A DNA stretch of 63,731 bases, filler included, from Ministeria vibrans ATCC 50519 (taxonomy: Eukaryota; Protista; Filasterea): assembly GCA_943704425.1 (NCBI GenBank). It is 9 parts of 9 records of this genome, joined end to end, with 100 filler letters (N's around TTAATTAATTAA, not from the genome) between each part and the next. Parts side by side here need not be neighbours in the genome. Positions count along the whole stretch, not along the records: positions 20,437 to 45,970 come from CALSCP010001600.1; 8 more parts are not named here. One strand, 5' to 3'. Of the stretch, positions 520-43,915 are shown one piece after another (position 1 is the stretch's first letter; each line of letters starts with the position of its first letter). A model generated the notes under the pieces. It did no database searches. It was given only the letters and a program-made list of their open reading frames with translations, and was not told where the DNA came from. The position numbers were made by a program, and so were the translations under genes.

Positions 520-2112
520 TCACGCGCGTCTACACTCTGCACCTACCATAACACCCGACTGGGCCACCAATTCTTGCGAATCTTGTCACAGCGACAGCGG
601 CACCACCGCTTCGTCTCCACAACCGGCCACAGACTCACCCCCGATCAACCTATTGCCTCGCTCGGTGAGTGTCGCGTCGTGTGTTGCCCCAAAACTCCAC
701 CCGCCACAGACCCCCCCAAGTGGCTTGAGCAACGCCAGCGTTAGCGGTGTTGCAGTCGTCGGGAAACGCCTCATGACTCCAATGGAACGCGCTCAGCTGC
801 TAAACCAGTCGCTGGACCAGCGCCTGCGTGCCTGTGAGTCGCTTCCGCCGAGTCGTCGCAGTGCCATGCGCCTCTCACTTGCTCGCCAGAAGGACGCCAA
901 CATTGCGTTTGCGCAGGTCCAACAGACGCGTCTTAAGCAGAAGCTGATGGCACACCAACAGAAGATGGTGGAACGAGCGGAAATGGCTCGAAAGAAAGCA
1001 GAGGTGAGAGCACGGGGATTCCAAAGAGAGGGAGAGAAAAAAATCATAACCATCATTATTTTTTATTGTACAACCAGCAAACTGCGCTGAGTGGGAGTGC
1101 ACAAGACGACAAGATTGCACAGCAAGTGCGGTTGTTTGATCAGCAGAACCATACAGGAACCGGAGCACTGGCTGCGACAGTGAGTGAGAGCGAAGCGCGT
1201 GCAACAGTGCTTGTGGAGTGCGTGTTGCGGCACACGCAACACCCTCTGTCGTTGGAGCTGGCCCAGAGACAGTACCGGTGCATTCAGGAGCACCAGAGGG
1301 CCGCTGATGCGACCGCACTGCTTTTGGCCCGTGAAGATGTACTGTCGATGGTCAGTTCGGTTCATGCACTGTTTCTGCAGGCGTACCCTCTGCTCGCAAA
1401 TGCCTCTCAGGACACGCTTGAGCATTCGCGCTTTGCTCTGGAAGAGGCGGCTCTGCCGCCCCTTACACCCGTACTTCTCCAGGGCTACTCCATTGTCGAG
1501 TCTGATCGCGACAGTGCACTCGCGGCACTGCTTCAGCGCCACTCGGACGCCCATCCGTCCCTCTTGAATGTCCCCAAGCAGTTTTGGCTTGAAAGCGAAC
1601 AGAAGAGCGACGAGGAGAGCGACGGGGTGGAAAATGATCAACAAGAGCAGAGCACCCCAATGCCCTACATATTGGCTATAGAGGCGCTCAGAGGGCTCTC
1701 CTTACACAACACGGCCTTTAAGAAGCTCGAAGTGCTCGTTCAAGTGACCCGTTTAATCTGCCAGGCTGTCTCTGACTTCCATCATCCTCTTTCCATCACT
1801 GTGTACGTTTATTTCTGTGTCTTTTCCTCACAAAGACAAAGAGAGACGACACACATACACATACTACAAAGACAGGCACACATATAAATTATCCCCCTAA
1901 CCCTAACTCTTCTTCCCCTCTCCAGTGGTGGCGACGACCTTGTCCCGCTCGTCAGCCTTGTCATCATGCGTGCGCAGCCTCCATCCCTCCTGGCGCAGTG
2001 TCGCTTTATGGCTGACTATGTTCCCGATGACTTCCTTCGTGGCGAAGAGGGATACTGTCTCAGTAATGTCCAGATTGCAATTGATCATATCAATGCCACA
2101 CTCTCTCTGTAA
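83..2112 (+). CDS. VPS9D1: MIT + VPS9 domain Rab GEF (VPS9D1-like), multi-exon, 5' end probably missing
   Basis: Spliced translation: MIT-like KEIHQLVDRALTFD..DAYDCFLRAV, polyQ, coiled coil, then VPS9 motifs FKKLEVLVQVTRLICQAV, VGGDDLVPLVSLVIMRA, FLRGEEGYCLSNVQIAIDHI. Stop TAA at 2110-2112. Confidence 0.85.
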
Positions 2113-2237
2113 CATAATAACTTTTTTAATAATAATAATTAATAGTGATAACAATATTTCATTTCATATAATATAATTAATTAGTATAAGATATAAGAGA
2201 GAGGGAGAGAGAGAGAGAGAGAGAGAGAGAAGTCTGT

Positions 2238-3317
2238 TCAAATGGAGACTGGCTGTATCTGAGGGTGCGCGGGAAGAATGTCGGGATGGCGGGAAAAGAC
2301 ACGGAAACGATCTTGTGAACGCCACTGCTCAGCATACCTACAAGACGACACACGCGATGCATTGCGTGAGCGTGAGTTCCATATCCAATTTTATCTCAAA
2401 CTCTCAATTACTATAATTCTATCACTTTGATATTTTATCTCTCTCTCTCTCTCTCTTGAACTCTCTCTCTCTTGAACTCTCTTGAACTCTCTCTCTTGAA
2501 CTCTCTCTCTTGAACTCTCTCTCTTGAACTCTCTCTCTTGAACTCTCTCTCTTGAACTCTCTCTCTTGAACTCTCTCTCTCTTGAACTCTCTCTCTTGAA
2601 CTCTCTCTCTTGAACTCTCTCTCTTGAACTCTCTCTCTTGAACTCTCTCTCTTGAACTCTCTCTCTTGAACTCTCTCTCTTGAACTCTCTCTCTTGAACT
2701 CTCTCTCTTGAACTCTCTCTTGAACTCTCTCTTGAACTCTCTCCGTCTCTTACCCATCACTAAAGTAGGCAATGAGTCTAAGGTTGGCACCCCAGTCCGT
2801 AATGCCGACCTTGCGCAGGCCTCCCGGCACGTCGTCCTTGCTGCTCTCAACGCAGTTAATTTGCCGACACAGCTGCCGGTACAGCATCAGCCCTCCGTCC
2901 GGATGGACTGAGTCGCTCCAGCATAGTCCGTCGGTCCATCGCTTGATTGAGCCTCCCAGATAAAATATGTAAACGTTGCCCGGACGGATTTCGGCTGCTT
3001 TGGGGCGTTCGGTGCACAGGCGCACATTGGCCTGCTCGGGGCACTTCTGGATGTACGAGAGAAGTTCGCGAGCGGAGTGCTCGGTGCGCACAAGACCCTG
3101 GAAAGTGACCCCAGGAAGGGAACAGGCGCAGTCGAGTGAATGGCCACACGTCGCAGTGATGAGAGACTGGTCGCGCAGTGTCTGTAGCTGCTGCTGCTGC
3201 TGGTGGTGCTGCTGCAGTTGAAGCTGCTGGAAACGGTGGTGCTGCTGTTGGACGTGGAGCTGCTGCTGCTGCTGTTGTTGTTGTTGTTGCTGTTGCTGTT
3301 CCTGTTGCTGTTGTTGT

Positions 3318-20436: not shown

Positions 20437-21730
20437 GGGGGACTCTTGTGTTCTTCTTTGCATTGTCTTAGGGGGTAAGATTTGTGAATAGTGAGAAATC
20501 GTGAGTGACTGATTTGGACTGTGTTTTGGACTCTTGTGTTCTTCTTTGCATTGTCTTAGCATGTAAGATTTGTGAATAGTGAGAAATCGTGAGTGACTGA
20601 TTTGGACTGTGTTTTGGACTCTTGTGTTCTTCTTTGCATTGTCTTAGTTGGTAAGATTTGTGAATAGTGAGAAATCGTGAGTGACTGATTTGGACTGTGG
20701 TTTGGACTCTTGTGTTCTTCTTTGCATTGTCTTAGGGCGTAAGTTTTGTGAATAGTGAGAAATCGTGAGTGACTGATTTGGACTGTGTTTTGGACTCTTG
20801 TGTTCTTCTTTGCATTGTCTTAGGGTGTAAGATTTGTGAATAGTGAGAAATCGTGAGTGACTGATTTGGACTGTGTTTTGGACTCTTGTGTTCTTCTTTG
20901 CATTGTCTTAGGGTGTAAGATTTGTGAATAGTGAGAAATCGTGAGTGACTGATTTGGACTGTGTTTTGGACTCTTGTGTTCTTCTTTGTTTTAGACGGTA
21001 AGATTTGTGAATAGTGAGAAATTGTGAGTGACTGATTTGGACTGTGTTTTGGACTCTTGTGTTCTTCTTTGCATTGTCTCAGCATGTAAGCTTTGTGAAT
21101 AGTGAGAAATCGTGAGTGACTGATTTGGACTGTGTTTTGGACTTTTGTGTTCTTCTTTACATTGTCTTAGGGGGTAAGAATAGTGAGAAATCGTGAGTGA
21201 CTGATTTGGACTGTGTTTTGGACTCTTGTGTTCTTCTTTGCATTGTCTTAGTTGGTAAGATTTGTGAATAGTGAGAAATCGTGAGTGACTGATTTGGACT
21301 GTGTTTTGGACTCTTGTGTTCTTCTTTGTTTTAGATGGTAAGATTTGTGAATAGTGAGAAATCGTGAGTGACTGATTTGGACTGTGTTTTGGACTCTTGT
21401 GTTATTCTTTGCATTGTCTTAGGGTGTAAGATTTGTGAATAGTGAGAAACCGTGAGTGACTGATTTGGACTGTGTTTTGGACTCTTGTGTTCTTCTTTGC
21501 ATTGTCTTAGGGGGTAAGATTTGTGAATAGTGAGAAATCGTGAGTGACTGATTTGGACTGTGTTTTGGACTCTTGTGTTCTTCTTTGTTTTAGATGGTAA
21601 GATTTGTGAATAGTGAGAAATCGTGAGTGACTGATTTGGACTGTGTTTTGGACTCTTGTGTTATTCTTTGCATTGTCTTAGGGTGTAAGATTTGTGAATA
21701 GTGAGAAACCGTGAGTGACTGATTTGGACT
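20437..21730 (+). repeat. 88-bp tandem array (15 units) with a hypervariable triplet flanked by splice acceptor and donor; candidate 3-nt micro-exon array
   Basis: Unit GTAAGATTTGTGAATAGTGAGAAATCGTGAGTGACTGATTTGGACTGTGTTTTGGACTCTTGTGTTCTTCTTTGCATTGTCTTAG-NNN. Triplets start at 20472, 20560, 20648, 20736, 20824, 20912, 20995, 21083, 21171, 21252, 21335, 21423, 21511, 21594 and 21682. Confidence refers to the repeat, not to splicing. Confidence 0.95.
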
Positions 21731-22140
21731 GGGATGACGGCGTTGTTCGAGTTGGCGTAGATCAAGTCAAACGCGTACCACGCCTCCTGGAGTACACAGA
21801 GAAGTCCCTTCATCCACTCAAACTGGTCCACGTCAGTCAGGACTTCCTTGTCGAGGGTCTCCTGCACGGCGGCCAGGTACTGGTATAGTGTTGTGGTTCC
21901 CGTGACACAAGCCGACACGCAACGGACGCAGCGCTGGTTCTTCTGCAGTGGTGTGAGCTCATCGAACTTCCAGCCGGCCCTCCCAGCCCTAGACTCATCG
22001 TGTGTTTCAACTCAGGTAGCATAGTATAGATCTTGCCAAGCGTCTCTTTCTGTTCCTACTTTGGGCTTGGACAGAAGTTGCAGGATAACTCTGCTCACAT
22101 CTTTGATGTCGTCGCGTGGCTCAATATTTAGAGAATGGTT
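21731..22140 (-). pseudogene. Interrupted coding-like fragment truncated by the array; unknown family
   Basis: Single frame ..AWQDLYYAT*VETHDESRAG..CVRCVSACVTGTTTLYQYLAAVQE..LQEAWYAFDLIY.. with one internal TGA. It runs abruptly into the repeat. Confidence 0.4.
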
Positions 22141-23058
22141 ATTCGAATTATTCGATCGAATATTCGCCGATCGATTTCGATTCGATTTTTTAAATCGCAT
22201 GTAAAGAGCTGCCGAAGGCGTGCACGGGTCCTCCTCTCGGGAGAGAAATCTATTTCCGATGAGAAAAGGACACATTGAATATGAAAATTCGTCAATAGAC
22301 GTCAACGCGCGAGGCTGAGCTCGTGCTCGAACGCGAATCAAGCAAGGCGGAAGACGACGTGGCGCGACGCACATTGCAGGCACACGAGGCGCAGGTCAAG
22401 GAATCTAACGGGTACGCGATTACTTTCTGCTTGTTTGGATATTTTTTGATCAATTTTGTGACTTTTTATCCGTGAATGACACAAACGAGACACAAGCAAG
22501 TTTTTGTCGTACTAACCTTTCGTCTTTGAGAAGAAGCGCTGTGAGATAGATGGAATACAGGTCTTGTGGCTGAATGTCTGCACTAAGGGACTGTTCAGCA
22601 AGCTACAATAAACGATGGCGGCGAGAGGGTGAGCGACGAGGGAAAGTAGAATGGGTCGAAGAGGTTTTTTCACCTGTAATTCGAGCAAAGCGCACGTCGA
22701 AATGAGCGCGTCGACATCCTGTTGTTCAATAGCAAGCGAGACGTCGTTCATTATAGACAATGTGTAAAAACTGTGGAACTGTGTCTATTTACTGTGAGAC
22801 GATTTGTGTTTACGTTGGAGATTGATTCATGATTGTCTTGTGTGTCTTCCTCACGAGTCACGATCACCGATTTCTACCACATCAGAGTTCACTCACTCAA
22901 AGAACTGACCCAGGGCGCTCAATGGACTCACTCAGTTAGCAGTTCAGGCGATAGTATTTTCATTCTCCATTTCTCCTACTTCAACAGTTCATCTTGGCTA
23001 CTTCTCAAATAACTGAGTCAAGTCTCAACATTTTTTGTAAGTCGAGCCAGTCGACCAG

Positions 23059-24463: not shown

Positions 24464-24685
24464 GTGCACTCGCAAGGAATCATTCACTGTGACGTGAAGC
24501 CTGAGAATGTGCTGATGACAAGCGAGTCGGAGCAGGCGCGGGCCGTATTGGCCGACTTTGATGTGAGTCTGGACGTGAGTGGGCGCACAATGACGATGAT
24601 GATGACAGTCGCTGCACCCGCGTCTGGACCGCGAGGCACAATGCAGTTTATGGCGCCCGAGCTCCTCAGCGGCACGCAAGATACA
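24464..24685 (+). pseudogene. Isolated protein kinase fragment (subdomains VIb-VIII)
   Basis: IIHCDVKPENVLM, VLADFD, GTMQFMAPELL. No flanking kinase exons recognised. Confidence 0.7.
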
Positions 24686-25049
24686 GGAATATTATATGTT
24701 CTTGTTCTACATCTGGTAGGGGTTCGAGCATTTACAGGAATATTTTCTTGTTTAATCCGCTGGCATGAAGCGAATTAGGGCGAATCTGCGCAAGTTTCCT
24801 TTATAGATCTATTTTTAGATCAGGCACTTTTCCCCATTTATCTCTTATAGAAGAAATCTGAGAAAGTGCCAAGAATTTTACAGGCAAATAATCATTGCGA
24901 GCTCCAAAACTACACCAAGAACACCGCCATGTATCCGAGAGCGATCTCGTTGGGAAAACATAAGCAGCTGTGTGTGTAGTGAAACTTTTTCTCTCTCACT
25001 CTCACTCTCTCTCTCTCTTCTTCCGTCAGTCTCTCCTGTCATCTGTCCG

Positions 25050-28928: not shown

Positions 28929-31593
28929 TAAGACTCACACTCAAACGACTCTCGCCAAACGTAAAGCGTCGCGCTCCACCCATGCTCGAGCGGCCGTCCG
29001 GTGTCATGCACCCGCGATCAATGTCCACATCGCTCATGCGACTGCGCTGGTACGCCAGCTTTGGAGTGCGCGGTTCACCGAGACGTCGTGTCTCGCGTGC
29101 AGGCGACGCCGTCAGCAGCGCGAGTCCCTTGGGACGGCCACGCTCGCCACCAATGTCCATGGGTACGGTGGTCGGTGGTCTGGGTGTCATGTACGGTGCT
29201 GGTACAGACTCCGCGGTGGTCGCCGCAGCGTTTGCGGATGCAGTGACGGCAATAGGAAGGCCATCTTTGGCCGAGGAGGACGCGAGAACGGTTGGCGCGT
29301 TATCAGACGACCCATCCATGAAAAATGGCAGAGACATCGGTCGTTCTTTGCGTCCACCGCTCTGCTGAGGTCGTCGTTTCACGGTGTCGTCCTCGGCCAC
29401 GGGTACACAGGCCCCCGACTCGCTCCGAGTCACACCGGCCACTTCAACGCTGGCGGCCGCCTGGCGAGTTACGAGTGGACTCTCGCGATGCACGCGCGGT
29501 GGCGAACGCAACGCCGAGCGTGTTAGACTGCTCAAGGCACTCTGGGAGCGAGTTGCCCGTTCACGCAGCGACAAAGGTTTGACTCTCAGCAAATCTACAG
29601 CGTTGCCGCCTTCATCGTCACGCACCATCCTATTTCCACCTAACCCATATTTTTCCTGATCGTCATCGCTGTCGCCGTCGTCGTCGTCGTTCCCCAGCGA
29701 CGACTGCATCGACAGCGTCGGCCCCAAACTCGTCTTGCTACTCGCTGACGTCAGACTCGTCATAGACGTCTTACTCGTGCGTTGCAGCTGCGTCTGTTTT
29801 GTCTCCTCCTCCTCCTCTCTCTTCGACATTTTCGCTTCCTCTTCTTCCTCCACCTCGTCCTCGTCCTCTTCGGCAATGCCAATGGGCGCACAGGGTGCAC
29901 CACCGTTCCGCCTGCGTCGGTACGCATACGACGATTCGCCATCCGACGACTCCGGCTCTTCCTCCTCGGCAATGGTCAGGCTGCGGGGCGGTCGCGTCAC
30001 CGCAGTCGTCTTGCCTGCAATTAAATGAGTTGATGTTGTTGTAAGAGAGTTGTTGTATGTGATTGAATGAATTGATTAAATTTTACCTGCACTTCCAGCA
30101 TCGCTGTCGGAGTCTTCCGTGCACGACGTCGACGGAGATACGGAACTGTCATCGTGCGACCGTTCATCCTCATCTTCCACTTCGTCCGCCACCTCGTCTT
30201 CTTCCTGTACTGTTCGACTGGGGGCAGCTGCACGGCTCAAAGCTGGACGCTGTGCTGCCTCTTCCTCCTCCTCCTCCTTATCCTCTTCATCATCGACAAA
30301 ACCCGTGGCGAGTCGAGACGATGTCCACGATGGCTTCGAACGACGATCCAGCATGCTGACGACACGTCGCGGACGCGCGGATGAATTGCGAGCCAGCGAT
30401 ACCCCGTCCGATTTGTTGAAACTATCGTTGGTGGTGAATCCAGACACTGAAGGTGACTTGAGGGGTAGTCTTCCTTGCGACTGCGACTGGTCCACTTCCC
30501 TTGTCGCGCCTTTAGTTGTGTGTGTCGCTGTGTTGCCACGAGAGTTGCGCGTACTCATTGGCAAAGGAGCACGTAACCTCTCTTCGCGCTTGAGTCGCTT
30601 CGTCACCGTTTGCTACGATACAAACAAAAAAAAATAAAAAAAAATAAAAAATAAAAAATGAATAAAATATATATATATGAACAACCCAACGCCACAATTG
30701 ATCACATACCTGAGCGAGAAGCAAGAACGTGGCGGCAATGTGATCGTAGGAGTCGGCGCCGAGTGATGCGTCGACCGTGTCCCTGTCAATGTCGATATCT
30801 TCGAGTTTTTGAAAGACTCGTTCGCGGTCTGCGTCGTTCATGAGCGTCATCCAAGTGTCACGCGAGTCGCTTGTGTCAAGCGCGTCGCCAAAGAAGGTGT
30901 CGTTGGCAGTGACCCAGGAGTGTTTGATGATGGTGTCGAGCGAGGCGCGTTCGGTAGGCTCGCGCTTGAGCATGAGCGAGATGAGGTGTCGACAGCCCTC
31001 GCTCATGTGCGACGGACATGTGTACTTGACGTCCATGATGTTGATGAGCATCTCGCTTGGGTTGGCCTCTTCAAAAGGCAGCCGTCCCGCGACAAACATG
31101 AACAGAATCACGCCCAGTGACCAAATATCGACAGCGGGTCCGTCGTACGCATCGCCTAGCAGCAGCTCGGGCGGCGAGTATGCCATGGTGCCACATGCCG
31201 TCTCCATCTTCTCCCCTGAAACACAAGACAAACCATTCAAATTCTGTATGGTACTTTTAGTTTTCAAACCTTCGTGATAGTCATTGCTAAAGCCAAAATC
31301 AGTGATCTTGATGACCGAGTCGCACAAAAGAAGATTTTCCGGCTTGAGATCACGGTGAACTACCCGCAGGTTGTGACAGTAGTCAATGGCCGAGAGGGTT
31401 TGTCGGAAGTAGGCACGTGCCGTGTCCTCGTCGAGCTGCCCCATGTTGCTCACGCGGTCGTACATGTCACCGTCTCGTGCCAGCTCCATAATAATGTACA
31501 GCTTTGACGGAGTGTCCAAGACCTGTTGCGACAAGAGTTTTAGATGGAGAAACACGAAAAATACCAATTTTATGGTGCACAACGACGCACACA

Positions 31594-31642
<49 letters not shown>

Positions 31643-32496
31643 ACACGCAAGACACACAGCGACAGACATATATAGGCGATTGCAGTAGTGTGTACCTCGT
31701 AGAGTTTGACAACGTGAGGGTGGTTCATCACCTTCATGCACCGCACCTCCTGGAACAAGTGTGCCCGTGCCTGGTCGTCCAACTTTTGCTTGTCGATAAT
31801 CTTGACAGCTACTTGTTCGCCTACGGAAAGCACAAGAGCGGGTGGGTTGAGCACGGCAACGACAAGAAAATGGGCGGTGGGCAAGAGCGAAAGAGAGAGA
31901 GCCAGAGAGAGAGGGAGAGAGAGAAAGATTGAGAGAGAGAGCGAGAAGGAAAGTGGATTGGAGACTGAACAACAAAAATGGTGCGACTGACTGTGCAGAG
32001 GACAGGGTGAGTAGAGGCACGTCGAGAACATCAAAAGGAATGTCGAGAGAATGTGTTCAGCGCGCGAGCAGGGCTGCAGCAGTGCTCAGTGGGTTCGTTT
32101 GAAGCATACCAGTGAAAACATGTTCGGCCAGCTTGACGACGGCAAAGTGACCGCGTCCCAGGTTCTGCTTGAAGTCGTACAGGCCGACGAACTCGCCAAA
32201 CGACGCAGTTGTCGTCGATGATGGCTGTGGGCCGGTCGGGCGCGGGTCGGCGACACGAAGAGAGGCCAAAGAGAGAGCGAGAGAAAACCAGAAGAAGGTT
32301 TTAGCAGGTGAAAAAAAAAAAGAAAAAAAAAACGGCGGTCTCAAAAAAAAAAAAGGAAAAAAGGTCGTTTGAGGGTGGGTGTAGGAGAGAGGGGCGGGCA
32401 CAATGAACAGAGAAGAGGGAGAGCGGGACAGGGCGGGCGGCAGACCTTGTGGGCGTGGGCAGAGACGGCGCGAATCTTGGCCACAGGATCAGACAT
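26999..32496 (-). CDS. SNRK: SNF-related serine/threonine kinase (SNRK-like) with UBA region and very long low-complexity C-terminus
   Basis: [108 protein letters not shown]. Confidence 0.92.
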
Positions 32497-37387: not shown

Positions 37388-37941
37388 TTAACAAGACTTG
37401 AGCAGCTCGGACGCCTCCTTGTGTGCGGTGCGGTCGTCGGGCGTGTCGCCCTGCATCGCCAGTGCTGCCATCAGCCACTCCTTTGCCTCGCTCTTGCGCC
37501 CCATCCGCAGCAGCGTCTTGCCCACCATCAGCGTATTCTTTGTGTAGAACCTGTACACATGCAAACCAACGTGAACAACAGGCTCGGTGTTTTCATTCTT
37601 ACCCCTTTTCAATGGCCTCTGCCGCCTCAAAGTGTGACAGTGCCTCTTCATACGTCGACTGTGGTGGCGTTGCAAACAGTGCTGCCGCCAAGTTGCGCTC
37701 AATCCATGACAGCTCGGCAAACGTGAAACACCAAAGACCCAGCAGATGTCGTGACGTTGCATCTTTTTCATTCAGGCGACACGCCGCCTCAAAGTGTTCG
37801 CGGATCTCAAAGGCACTCCCAATGCGCTCCTTGGTCGACTTGTAGTCTCCCGCTCGACTCAGTCCAATAGCGTACCACTGATAAAATCAATAATAATGTT
37901 ATTATGATTATTATGATTATGCAGATGACACTTGACACTCA

Positions 37942-37982
<41 letters not shown>

Positions 37983-41807: not shown

Positions 41808-41885
<78 letters not shown>

Positions 41886-43349: not shown

Positions 43350-43385
<36 letters not shown>

Positions 43386-43915
43386 ACACACACACACACA
43401 CACACACACAAACGCACACACCCGCACAACACACTAACACACACACGCACAACACACTATTCACTGTCACACACAACACAAACAAGTTTACCCTTTGCCT
43501 CCCGTTCCACCGATGACCGTCATTTGACACCAGTCTACAAATTGAGACCCCTGGACACACAGGGCAAGGGGTGAATCGGCTGTGGACGACGAGAAACACG
43601 TCGCAACGCACTCACCTTGTGTGCCAAATAGGCCTTCTTGCGATCAGACAGGCTAAGGATGCGCACGGCTCGCCTGCGCTTGTCCGTCTCCGACCCCCCA
43701 GCTCCGCCTTCGTCGGGCCCGTCAAGGGCCGCAACCTCCGTGGCGTCCGCGTCAAACACTTCAGGAAGGTACTTGCGATTGTGCGCCTCCATCACCGCCA
43801 CCAGCTTTTCCTTGATCGTAATGCCGCGCCGCCGAATGGATCGGCTGTGCGACAATCGACATTGCTGAAGCCTTGGCCGTGTCCACGACACGAGAAGGCC
43901 CGAAAAGACGGACAT
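39862..43915 (-). CDS. MTG2: Obg-family GTPase (MTG2/GTPBP5-like), multi-exon, spanning the 5-N gap
   Basis: [17 protein letters not shown] (about 43490-43550) splices in frame to [16 protein letters not shown] (about 41788). Also [68 protein letters not shown]. Confidence 0.92.
41935..43076 (+). CDS. Sulfatase (iduronate-2-sulfatase-like), 3' half only
   Basis: HGDHGWNLG|[64 protein letters not shown]. Confidence 0.9.

Follow-up and report, generated by a model that had tools for sequence, protein, structure and literature searches.

In the micro-exon genes (MEGs) of schistosomes and the 'bicycle' genes of aphids, much of the coding sequence consists of numerous tiny exons, each a multiple of 3 nt long, so that including or excluding one keeps the reading frame; both groups of genes evolve fast. 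Their exons are about 6-80 nt long, their introns are ordinary, non-repeated and mostly long, and their products are secreted effectors. Here we analyzed a tandem array from the filasterean Ministeria vibrans ATCC 50519 (assembly GCA_943704425.1). The array lies in a stretch of DNA of 63,731 nucleotides, filler included, that joins nine parts of the assembly and is called the window below; the relevant part, positions 20,437 to 45,970, comes from CALSCP010001600.1 (contig C1600). Each 88-bp unit of the array is very probably one complete spliceosomal GT-AG intron of 77-86 nt plus an exon of 3 nt, and RNA matching sister copies shows chains of such one-codon exons spliced into the mRNA of a family of LRR–GTPase–caspase genes, the window copy being a fragment. 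The Ministeria arrays share with MEGs and bicycle genes the many short exons, the preserved frame and the fast evolution, but they have exactly one codon per exon, near-identical tandem introns of 77-86 nt and an LRR–GTPase–caspase host in which they form a linker only. An original prediction, made from the window sequence alone, had likened the array to the schistosome genes. The comparison stands as an analogy but not as membership, since most of the coding sequence of a MEG consists of symmetric micro-exons, and here they make up the linker only.

Three other systems share single aspects of the array. Isolated micro-exons, such as those of RPS24 (3/18/22 bp) and those of animal neurons and of plants, likewise indicate that the spliceosome can include a 3-nt exon, but they come one or a few per gene, lie between long introns and often have dedicated factors, whereas up to ~45 follow one another here between minimal introns. 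To our knowledge, 3-nt exons are thought to be at the limit of spliceosome recognition and occur only as isolated, specially regulated cases. Recursive splicing of the Drosophila Ubx type uses ratchet points (AG/GTAAGT, the slash marking the splice site here and below), zero-length exons through which a long interval is removed stepwise. Acceptor and donor are juxtaposed in both systems, but a ratchet point leaves nothing in the mRNA, whereas each step here would leave one codon and the steps are repeats of each other. The SNORD115/116 loci are also built of tandem units of one intron and one short exon, and they evolve by birth-and-death and conversion; their exons are non-coding and each intron carries a snoRNA, whereas the exons here are coding and the intron has no recognizable RNA. 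No precedent for chained single-codon exons, or for tandemly repeated introns in a coding region, appeared in the literature searched. The gene architecture is apparently undescribed, an extreme form of micro-exon architecture.

The window array and its genomic family

Unit-by-unit cutting of the window array gave 15 head-to-tail units (Table 1), eleven of 88 bp, three of 83 bp and one of 81 bp, the last unit being cut after 82 nt at position 21731. Tandem Repeats Finder (TRF) reported a period of 88 with 14.9 copies and 92 % matches, along with a higher-order period of 259 bp. All 15 units show a T-rich tract, YAG, three nucleotides and then GTAAG(A/T/C), with 14 TAG acceptors and one CAG, and the triplets read GGG CAT TTG GGC GGT GGT ACG CAT GGG TTG ATG GGT GGG ATG GGT in order. 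On recount, the number of units, this pattern and the triplet list matched the original prediction exactly. The three triplet columns are the most variable of the unit: their entropy is 1.3-1.8 bits, whereas the other 85 columns average 0.054. Minor alleles occupy 12/30 triplet cells versus 8/850 of the remainder, a 43-fold contrast, and the repeat pattern is confirmed as lying far beyond chance. The splice signals are intact in all 15 units, and the 1+2 frame (AFGRWYAWVDGWDG) is open.

We searched the genome's own assembly (29.7 Mb, 2860 contigs) for further copies and found ~150 unit matches on at least 12 contigs. They fall into two subfamilies, one of 88/89-bp units that are 88-99 % identical and one of 80-bp units that are about 77 % identical, and AG-NNN-GTAAG recurs at unit spacing in all arrays found. 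Arrays are embedded in a gene on C1260, C1049, C73, C2647, C915 and C43, and lie between conserved exons at loci L022, L023, L026, L027, L028 and L029; the 5' LRR module of the host gene is present at at least 12 loci. We estimate that at least seven paralogous LRR–Roc/COR-like–caspase genes carry arrays, probably ~12 in total. Within genes, the assembled arrays range from 9 to ~45 units. Runs of N fall exactly at arrays on six contigs, C1600 (L021/L002), C1260 (L022), C2647 (L027), C173 (L030), C2362 (L043) and C2121 (L045), and array lengths from this assembly are lower bounds. An exact-pattern scan for the unit in the metagenome collection gave 0 matches.

Two loci depart from the usual layout. 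The array on C312 (L024, oriented 2096-3240) has lost the 5' LRR module and has a TPR-like gene and dispersed repeats upstream. In the used 1+2 phase it has a T/GA in frame, one of its donors is GCAAG, and by its sequence it is probably a pseudogene copy. At L033 (C2596, 1963-2729), the same LRR 5' module is followed by micro-exons AAG, TCT, TTT and GGC and one 80-nt unit; beyond these lie unrelated DNA and an exon for a tyrosine/Ser-Thr kinase (PF07714, 6e-14). This layout suggests that domains were shuffled at the micro-exon region.

The units carry the consensus signals of a GT-AG spliceosomal intron throughout the family. Of 189 units, 179 have a spacer of exactly 3 nt, 185 have a YAG acceptor and 175 have a GTAAG donor; the exceptions lie at array ends or in orphan arrays. 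The predicted branch motif, CTGAT, is invariant in both subfamilies. It is followed by a pyrimidine-rich zone of 39-47 nt free of AG, and the first AG after the motif is always the acceptor. Certain triplets are absent: NAG occurs in 0/180 where 4.7 are expected, and would be unfavorable because a competing acceptor would delete the exon; GTN is also found in 0/180. The per-position entropy check put forward with the original prediction peaked at the three triplet columns in the window and in seven sister arrays. Evenly spread variation or degraded AG/GT in copies elsewhere, named at the time as speaking against the prediction, was not seen, and instead variation is concentrated in the triplets and the signals are mostly kept. 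Avoidance of stop triplets, a further proposed check, gave a divided answer. The used frame of six gene-embedded arrays contains 0 stops (permutation mean 2.0) and the 2+1 frame contains 11, but at P about 0.09 the absence is not significant on its own.

Host genes and spliced RNA of a sister array

In the host gene, an ATG exon and exon 2 encode an LRR-like N-terminus. Exon 2 is 130 nt long and ends in phase 1 (…TGT GCN A/GTAAG). Three non-repeat introns, split by the 3-nt exons AAG/GAG, TTT and ACT/ATT/TTT, lie between exon 2 and the array, and two short non-repeat introns with 3-nt exons TTG and TTG follow on its 3' side. Exon 3 then starts x/AC CGN GCG CAR TGG AAG (phase 1); its frame is established because paralogs conserve the encoded sequence (RAQWK…) and the alternative frame contains a stop. 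Since exon 2 ends in phase 1 and the frame of exon 3 is set, the triplets are read in the 1+2 phase; the 1+2 frame of the original prediction is thus the one set by the flanking exons in gene-embedded sister arrays. Downstream of the array are a P-loop region (GAVxAGKTAL … DFAG … GTHxD), a 550-residue exon and a caspase domain. Apart from the micro-exons, host exons measure 63-1600 nt, and the part built from micro-exons amounts to 13-45 codons of >1000.

The host family was searched and folded exon by exon, by reference. The caspase domain matches PF00656 (Peptidase_C14) at 25.1 bits, above the cut-off of 21.4, and an NCBIfam caspase model at 3.7e-8, which is under that model's own cut-off. 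The central region has no sequence match in Pfam or PDB and nothing significant for Roc/COR in NCBIfam, and a deep search of 1.84 billion representative proteins found only four relatives of the central exon, all metagenome fragments. An AlphaFold (AF2) model of this region has a pLDDT of 51. Its top 11 Foldseek matches are Roc-COR tandems (LRRK1, LRRK2 and bacterial/archaeal Roco proteins), with TM-scores of 0.15-0.29. The Walker A motif GAVxAGKTAL, DFAG and GTHxD are what we take to be Roc-type GTPase motifs. As modeled, the host resembles Roco proteins (LRRK1/2, bacterial Roco) in its N-terminal LRR, its P-loop GTPase with DFAG and GTHxD, and its COR-like region, but it ends in a caspase domain rather than a kinase and, as noted, lacks a Pfam or PDB sequence match for Roc/COR. 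We describe it tentatively as an LRR–Roc/COR-like–caspase protein, in which the Roc/COR part is weakly supported. In the protein collection, exon 1 matched one genomic read-through open reading frame (ENA metagenome) and no RNA-derived fragment with micro-exon residues. A relative of the host family on an ENA metagenome contig (L041, 500-2600) has a central exon 58 % identical, with WD40 exons placed directly on the P-loop exon and no array; the array therefore goes with the LRR-type members.

To examine splicing, four public runs (X1, X4, X5 and X10) were compared with C1049 (L023, gene on the minus strand), a complete and gap-free paralog. X4 belongs to a 2025 study and X5 to a 2011 study, which are independent. 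Eight introns, each bounded by GT..AG when read on the gene strand, are missing from contigs of X1, X4 and X5, and these runs were taken as RNA because of the resulting joins; X10, which behaves as DNA, has none. After the last base of exon 2 (+3143), X5 and X4 read AAG TTT ACT GGG GGG ACT, where the genome predicts AAG TTT ACT GGG GGA ACT. The first micro-exon has a weak GTTTGT donor and is included. On the side of exon 3, X5 joins TTG + TT + G/ACCGAG, which corresponds to TTG-TTG-exon 3, and X4 reads GCT TTG TTG before exon 3. Record 1 of X1 (3471 nt) contains exon 3 followed by exons 2 and 1; exon 3 and exon 2 are separated by 68 letters and a shared G, giving 69 nt or 23 codons. Other contigs are partly spliced; for example, a chain of TTT ACT GGG GGG ACT GGA GGA TTG GGG ACT abuts a retained repeat intron. 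Introns are retained on either side of spliced stretches, with no strict order of removal apparent.

For the C1049 sister array, RNA from both studies thus has introns removed and exon bases joined. Genomic DNA does not contain the spliced junction, and therefore a processed copy does not explain the RNA chains. For a sister array of the same repeat family in the same genome, these data lend direct RNA support to the proposal that the constant part is a spliceosomal intron and the triplets are 3-nt exons. The combinatorial skipping proposed alongside it found no such support: the C1049 contigs, which drop rare variants, contain full chains and partly spliced intermediates only, with no skipped form. 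The two RNA sources differ in their chains, with (GGA)n runs in organism A (poly-Arg in the used frame) and GGA GGA TTG GGG ACT in organism B. Arrays appear to turn over between strains.

Based on the gene context, splice signals, frame compatibility and the spliced RNA of one paralog, all observed directly, we propose the following mechanism. The modules would have been amplified in tandem within the 5' part of paralogous genes that form a lineage-restricted family. Removal of every repeat intron would yield an mRNA in which single-codon exons follow one another in the 1+2 phase, and together these would encode a fast-evolving, variable-length predicted linker between the LRR and the GTPase domain. 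Recognition is likely by intron definition, with a single short intron removed per step; partly spliced intermediates of both polarities exist. Arrays may grow by unequal crossing-over, and because each unit adds exactly one codon, gain or loss of units never breaks the frame.

The window copy and its surroundings

The original prediction placed the start of the window array at a contig edge. It begins instead inside C1600, where a scaffold gap holds ~1.2 kb of N. At the right end, the 15th intron is broken off and joined to unique sequence (21731/21732). The window units belong to the 88-nt subtype and match the consensus of the C1260 gene array at 93 % identity. Closer still, at 97-99 % identity, are units that open an array behind a complete 5' LRR module at the end of C73 and units that close an array ahead of exon 3 on C173; a gene with the 88-nt subtype therefore exists. 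Judged by sequence, the window copy appears to be a piece of an 88-nt-subtype array that, as assembled, lies outside any complete gene. It would be either a relic fragment or a piece split from its gene by assembly.

Table 1. Predicted features of the window array and its right flank (window positions)
Feature	Position	Strand	Remarks
Tandem array, 15 units	20440..21731	+	each unit a 3-nt predicted exon and a 78-85-nt GT-AG intron; left end cut by scaffold gap, right end inside last intron
Predicted micro-exon 1, GGG	20472..20474	+	TAG, GGG, GTAAGA
Predicted micro-exon 2, CAT	20560..20562	+	
Predicted micro-exon 3, TTG	20648..20650	+	
Predicted micro-exon 4, GGC	20736..20738	+	donor GTAAGT
Predicted micro-exon 5, GGT	20824..20826	+	
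Representative 85-nt intron	20827..20911	+	donor GTAAGA and acceptor TAG; CTGAT branch-like motif (invariant), then a T-rich tract of 47 nt without AG; no Rfam match, no unusual fold
Predicted micro-exon 6, GGT	20912..20914	+	
Predicted micro-exon 7, ACG	20995..20997	+	preceded by 80-nt intron variant with TTTGTTTTAG acceptor
Predicted micro-exon 8, CAT	21083..21085	+	CAG acceptor, GTAAGC donor
Predicted micro-exon 9, GGG	21171..21173	+	followed by 78-nt intron variant
Predicted micro-exon 10, TTG	21252..21254	+	
Predicted micro-exon 11, ATG	21335..21337	+	
Predicted micro-exon 12, GGT	21423..21425	+	
Predicted micro-exon 13, GGG	21511..21513	+	
Predicted micro-exon 14, ATG	21594..21596	+	
Predicted micro-exon 15, GGT	21682..21684	+	
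Truncated last intron	21685..21731	+	donor and CTGAT kept, polypyrimidine tract and acceptor missing; repeat ends ...TTTGGACTG, then GGATGACGG
Unique flank, 326 bp	21732..22057		open frames on both strands; no genome paralog, no Pfam/Atlas match, no host-family homology
Mosaic of short dispersed repeats	22058..22700		includes 62-bp element 22416-22478

The unique flank found nothing in Pfam, in the protein Atlas or in a protein-level search of its own genome. Within the repeat mosaic beyond it, positions 22303-22405 are a dispersed repeat of ~100 bp that is 95-99 % identical on at least seven contigs, and the 62-bp element is also present beside the sister arrays on C2854 (four tandem copies) and C312. 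Both repeats may be connected with the way in which array fragments were dispersed.

Elsewhere in the piece, two protein-kinase exons lie at 24464-24775 (+) and 30515-32020 (-), with Pfam Pkinase matches of 4e-12 and 5e-49; as far as tested, neither is related to the array. The piece also has many long (CA)n/(AC)n microsatellites (31588-31658, 37935-37979, 41811-41885 and 43354-43457), and introns of the host family (L022, L024) are likewise filled with CA-rich 'CACTAAGCACAC' repeats.

Competing explanations and intron conservation

Several observations weigh against our interpretation. Splicing was demonstrated in one paralog, C1049, and not in the window copy, whose array ends without an acceptor; when host-family exons were used as tblastn queries, neither the C1600 part of the window nor the 10 kb that precede the gap gave a match. 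The RNA label of X1, X4 and X5 is a guess apart from the joins, and some of the partly spliced contigs may stem from unsampled paralogs. The RNA chain has 23 triplets compared with 13 assembled in C1049, in a different order and with GGG for the GGA of the assembly. Given these longer and different chains and the gaps at arrays, the arrays must be under-assembled, strain-variable, or both. The lack of stops in the used frame, taken alone, is no more than suggestive, and the encoded peptides, rich in W, R, G and D, look odd for a linker. The Roc/COR assignment depends on a low-confidence model with low TM-scores and on motifs.

It is possible, though in our judgment unlikely, that the window array is itself a working part of an expressed gene, with its other exons hidden by the gap or by mis-scaffolding and with variable skipping that generates combinatorial peptides. 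The near-identical units on C73 and C173, the contig breaks that fall within arrays, and the intact signals and open 1+2 frame of all 15 units agree with this, and isoform branching could be the reason that RNA contigs break after six micro-exons. However, the breaks fit retained-intron variants equally well, no skipped isoform is present in the RNA contigs, and the array's right end is a truncated intron on unique, non-family sequence. A very improbable alternative is that the whole interval between exons 2 and 3 is one long phase-1 intron that holds an intron-derived tandem repeat as a satellite, so that the triplets never enter mRNA. The end of exon 2 and the start of exon 3 do share a phase and could be joined directly in frame, but removal of the interval as a whole is contradicted by the C1049 RNA, in which the predicted triplets follow exon 2 and precede exon 3 in contigs of two studies, 69 nt bridge the two exons and no direct join was found. 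It would also leave the concentration of variation in the triplets, the strict 3-nt spacing and the absence of NAG without a cause.

Tandemly repeated introns are otherwise known, from our literature search, only from snoRNA host genes, and between loci the repeat intron is conserved to the same degree as coding exons. Both facts would suit an array that houses a snoRNA or structured RNA in each intron, as in SNORD115/116, with incidental exons. We nevertheless consider this exceedingly improbable: the repeat intron has no Rfam match at E<=1 and folds no better than shuffles (z -0.4 and +0.8), introns of 77-86 nt are too short for a snoRNA plus splice signals, and the exons lie within a conserved coding frame. 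Neither the Rfam search nor the folding gave a sign of the box C/D or H/ACA RNA of a snoRNA host array. Many near-identical intron copies in one genome also bring to mind introners, with each unit an independent insertion of a mobile intron or transposon. We give this almost no credence, as the copies are head-to-tail with fixed 3-nt spacing and a single phase, are restricted to one gene family and its fragments, and lack target-site duplications or conserved terminal repeats; the solitary copies dispersed in unrelated genes that characterize introners were not seen. Collapse of unlinked satellite copies during assembly could be invoked for the triplet variation, given that arrays coincide with assembly gaps and that RNA holds more units than the assembly. 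It is barely credible as an explanation, because 8 arrays show the same pattern independently, as do RNA contigs from other studies, and collapse could not confine variation to exactly 3/88 positions.

If the units are introns with single-codon exons, as we favor, then the introns are more conserved than the codons between them. In 8/8 arrays (the window array and seven sisters), variability in the triplet columns exceeds that in the intron columns by a factor of 17-86. For example, seven introns of L023 differ at 3/602 cells, and their exons GGA, ACT, TTG and ACG have no base in common. Between loci, the repeat-intron consensus is 78-96 % identical, compared to 78-90 % for coding exons and 41-92 % for adjoining ordinary introns. 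Purifying selection on the intron alone cannot produce this contrast between intron and codon, which needs one of three things: homogenization that spares the exons, change targeted to the exons, or strong diversifying selection on the linker. A more far-reaching and doubtful idea is that the arrays are a dedicated diversity cassette, in which introns are renewed or homogenized while the codons are spared or actively mutated. This would allow the linker of immune-like LRR–Roc–caspase proteins to change very fast in both length and sequence, and variable exon inclusion would add combinatorial diversity at the RNA level. In one candidate process, a master intron would enter spliced mRNA by reverse splicing, and reverse transcription and recombination would come next; conversion combined with diversifying selection would be another candidate.

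Ministeria thus has a natural gene family with chains of 13 to ~45 3-nt exons, for which RNA supports correct joining. Gene predictors and short-read assemblers will miss or break such loci, which serves as a practical warning. The arrays are a clean natural setting in which to study pure intron definition and the order in which introns are spliced, and tandem duplication within them changes the protein one codon per step with the frame intact. That the introns are more conserved than the codons they separate points to intron-specific homogenization or exon-specific diversification. If the diversity cassette is real, it would be a new route to protein variability in a unicellular eukaryote, with dozens of 3-nt exons defined purely by introns.

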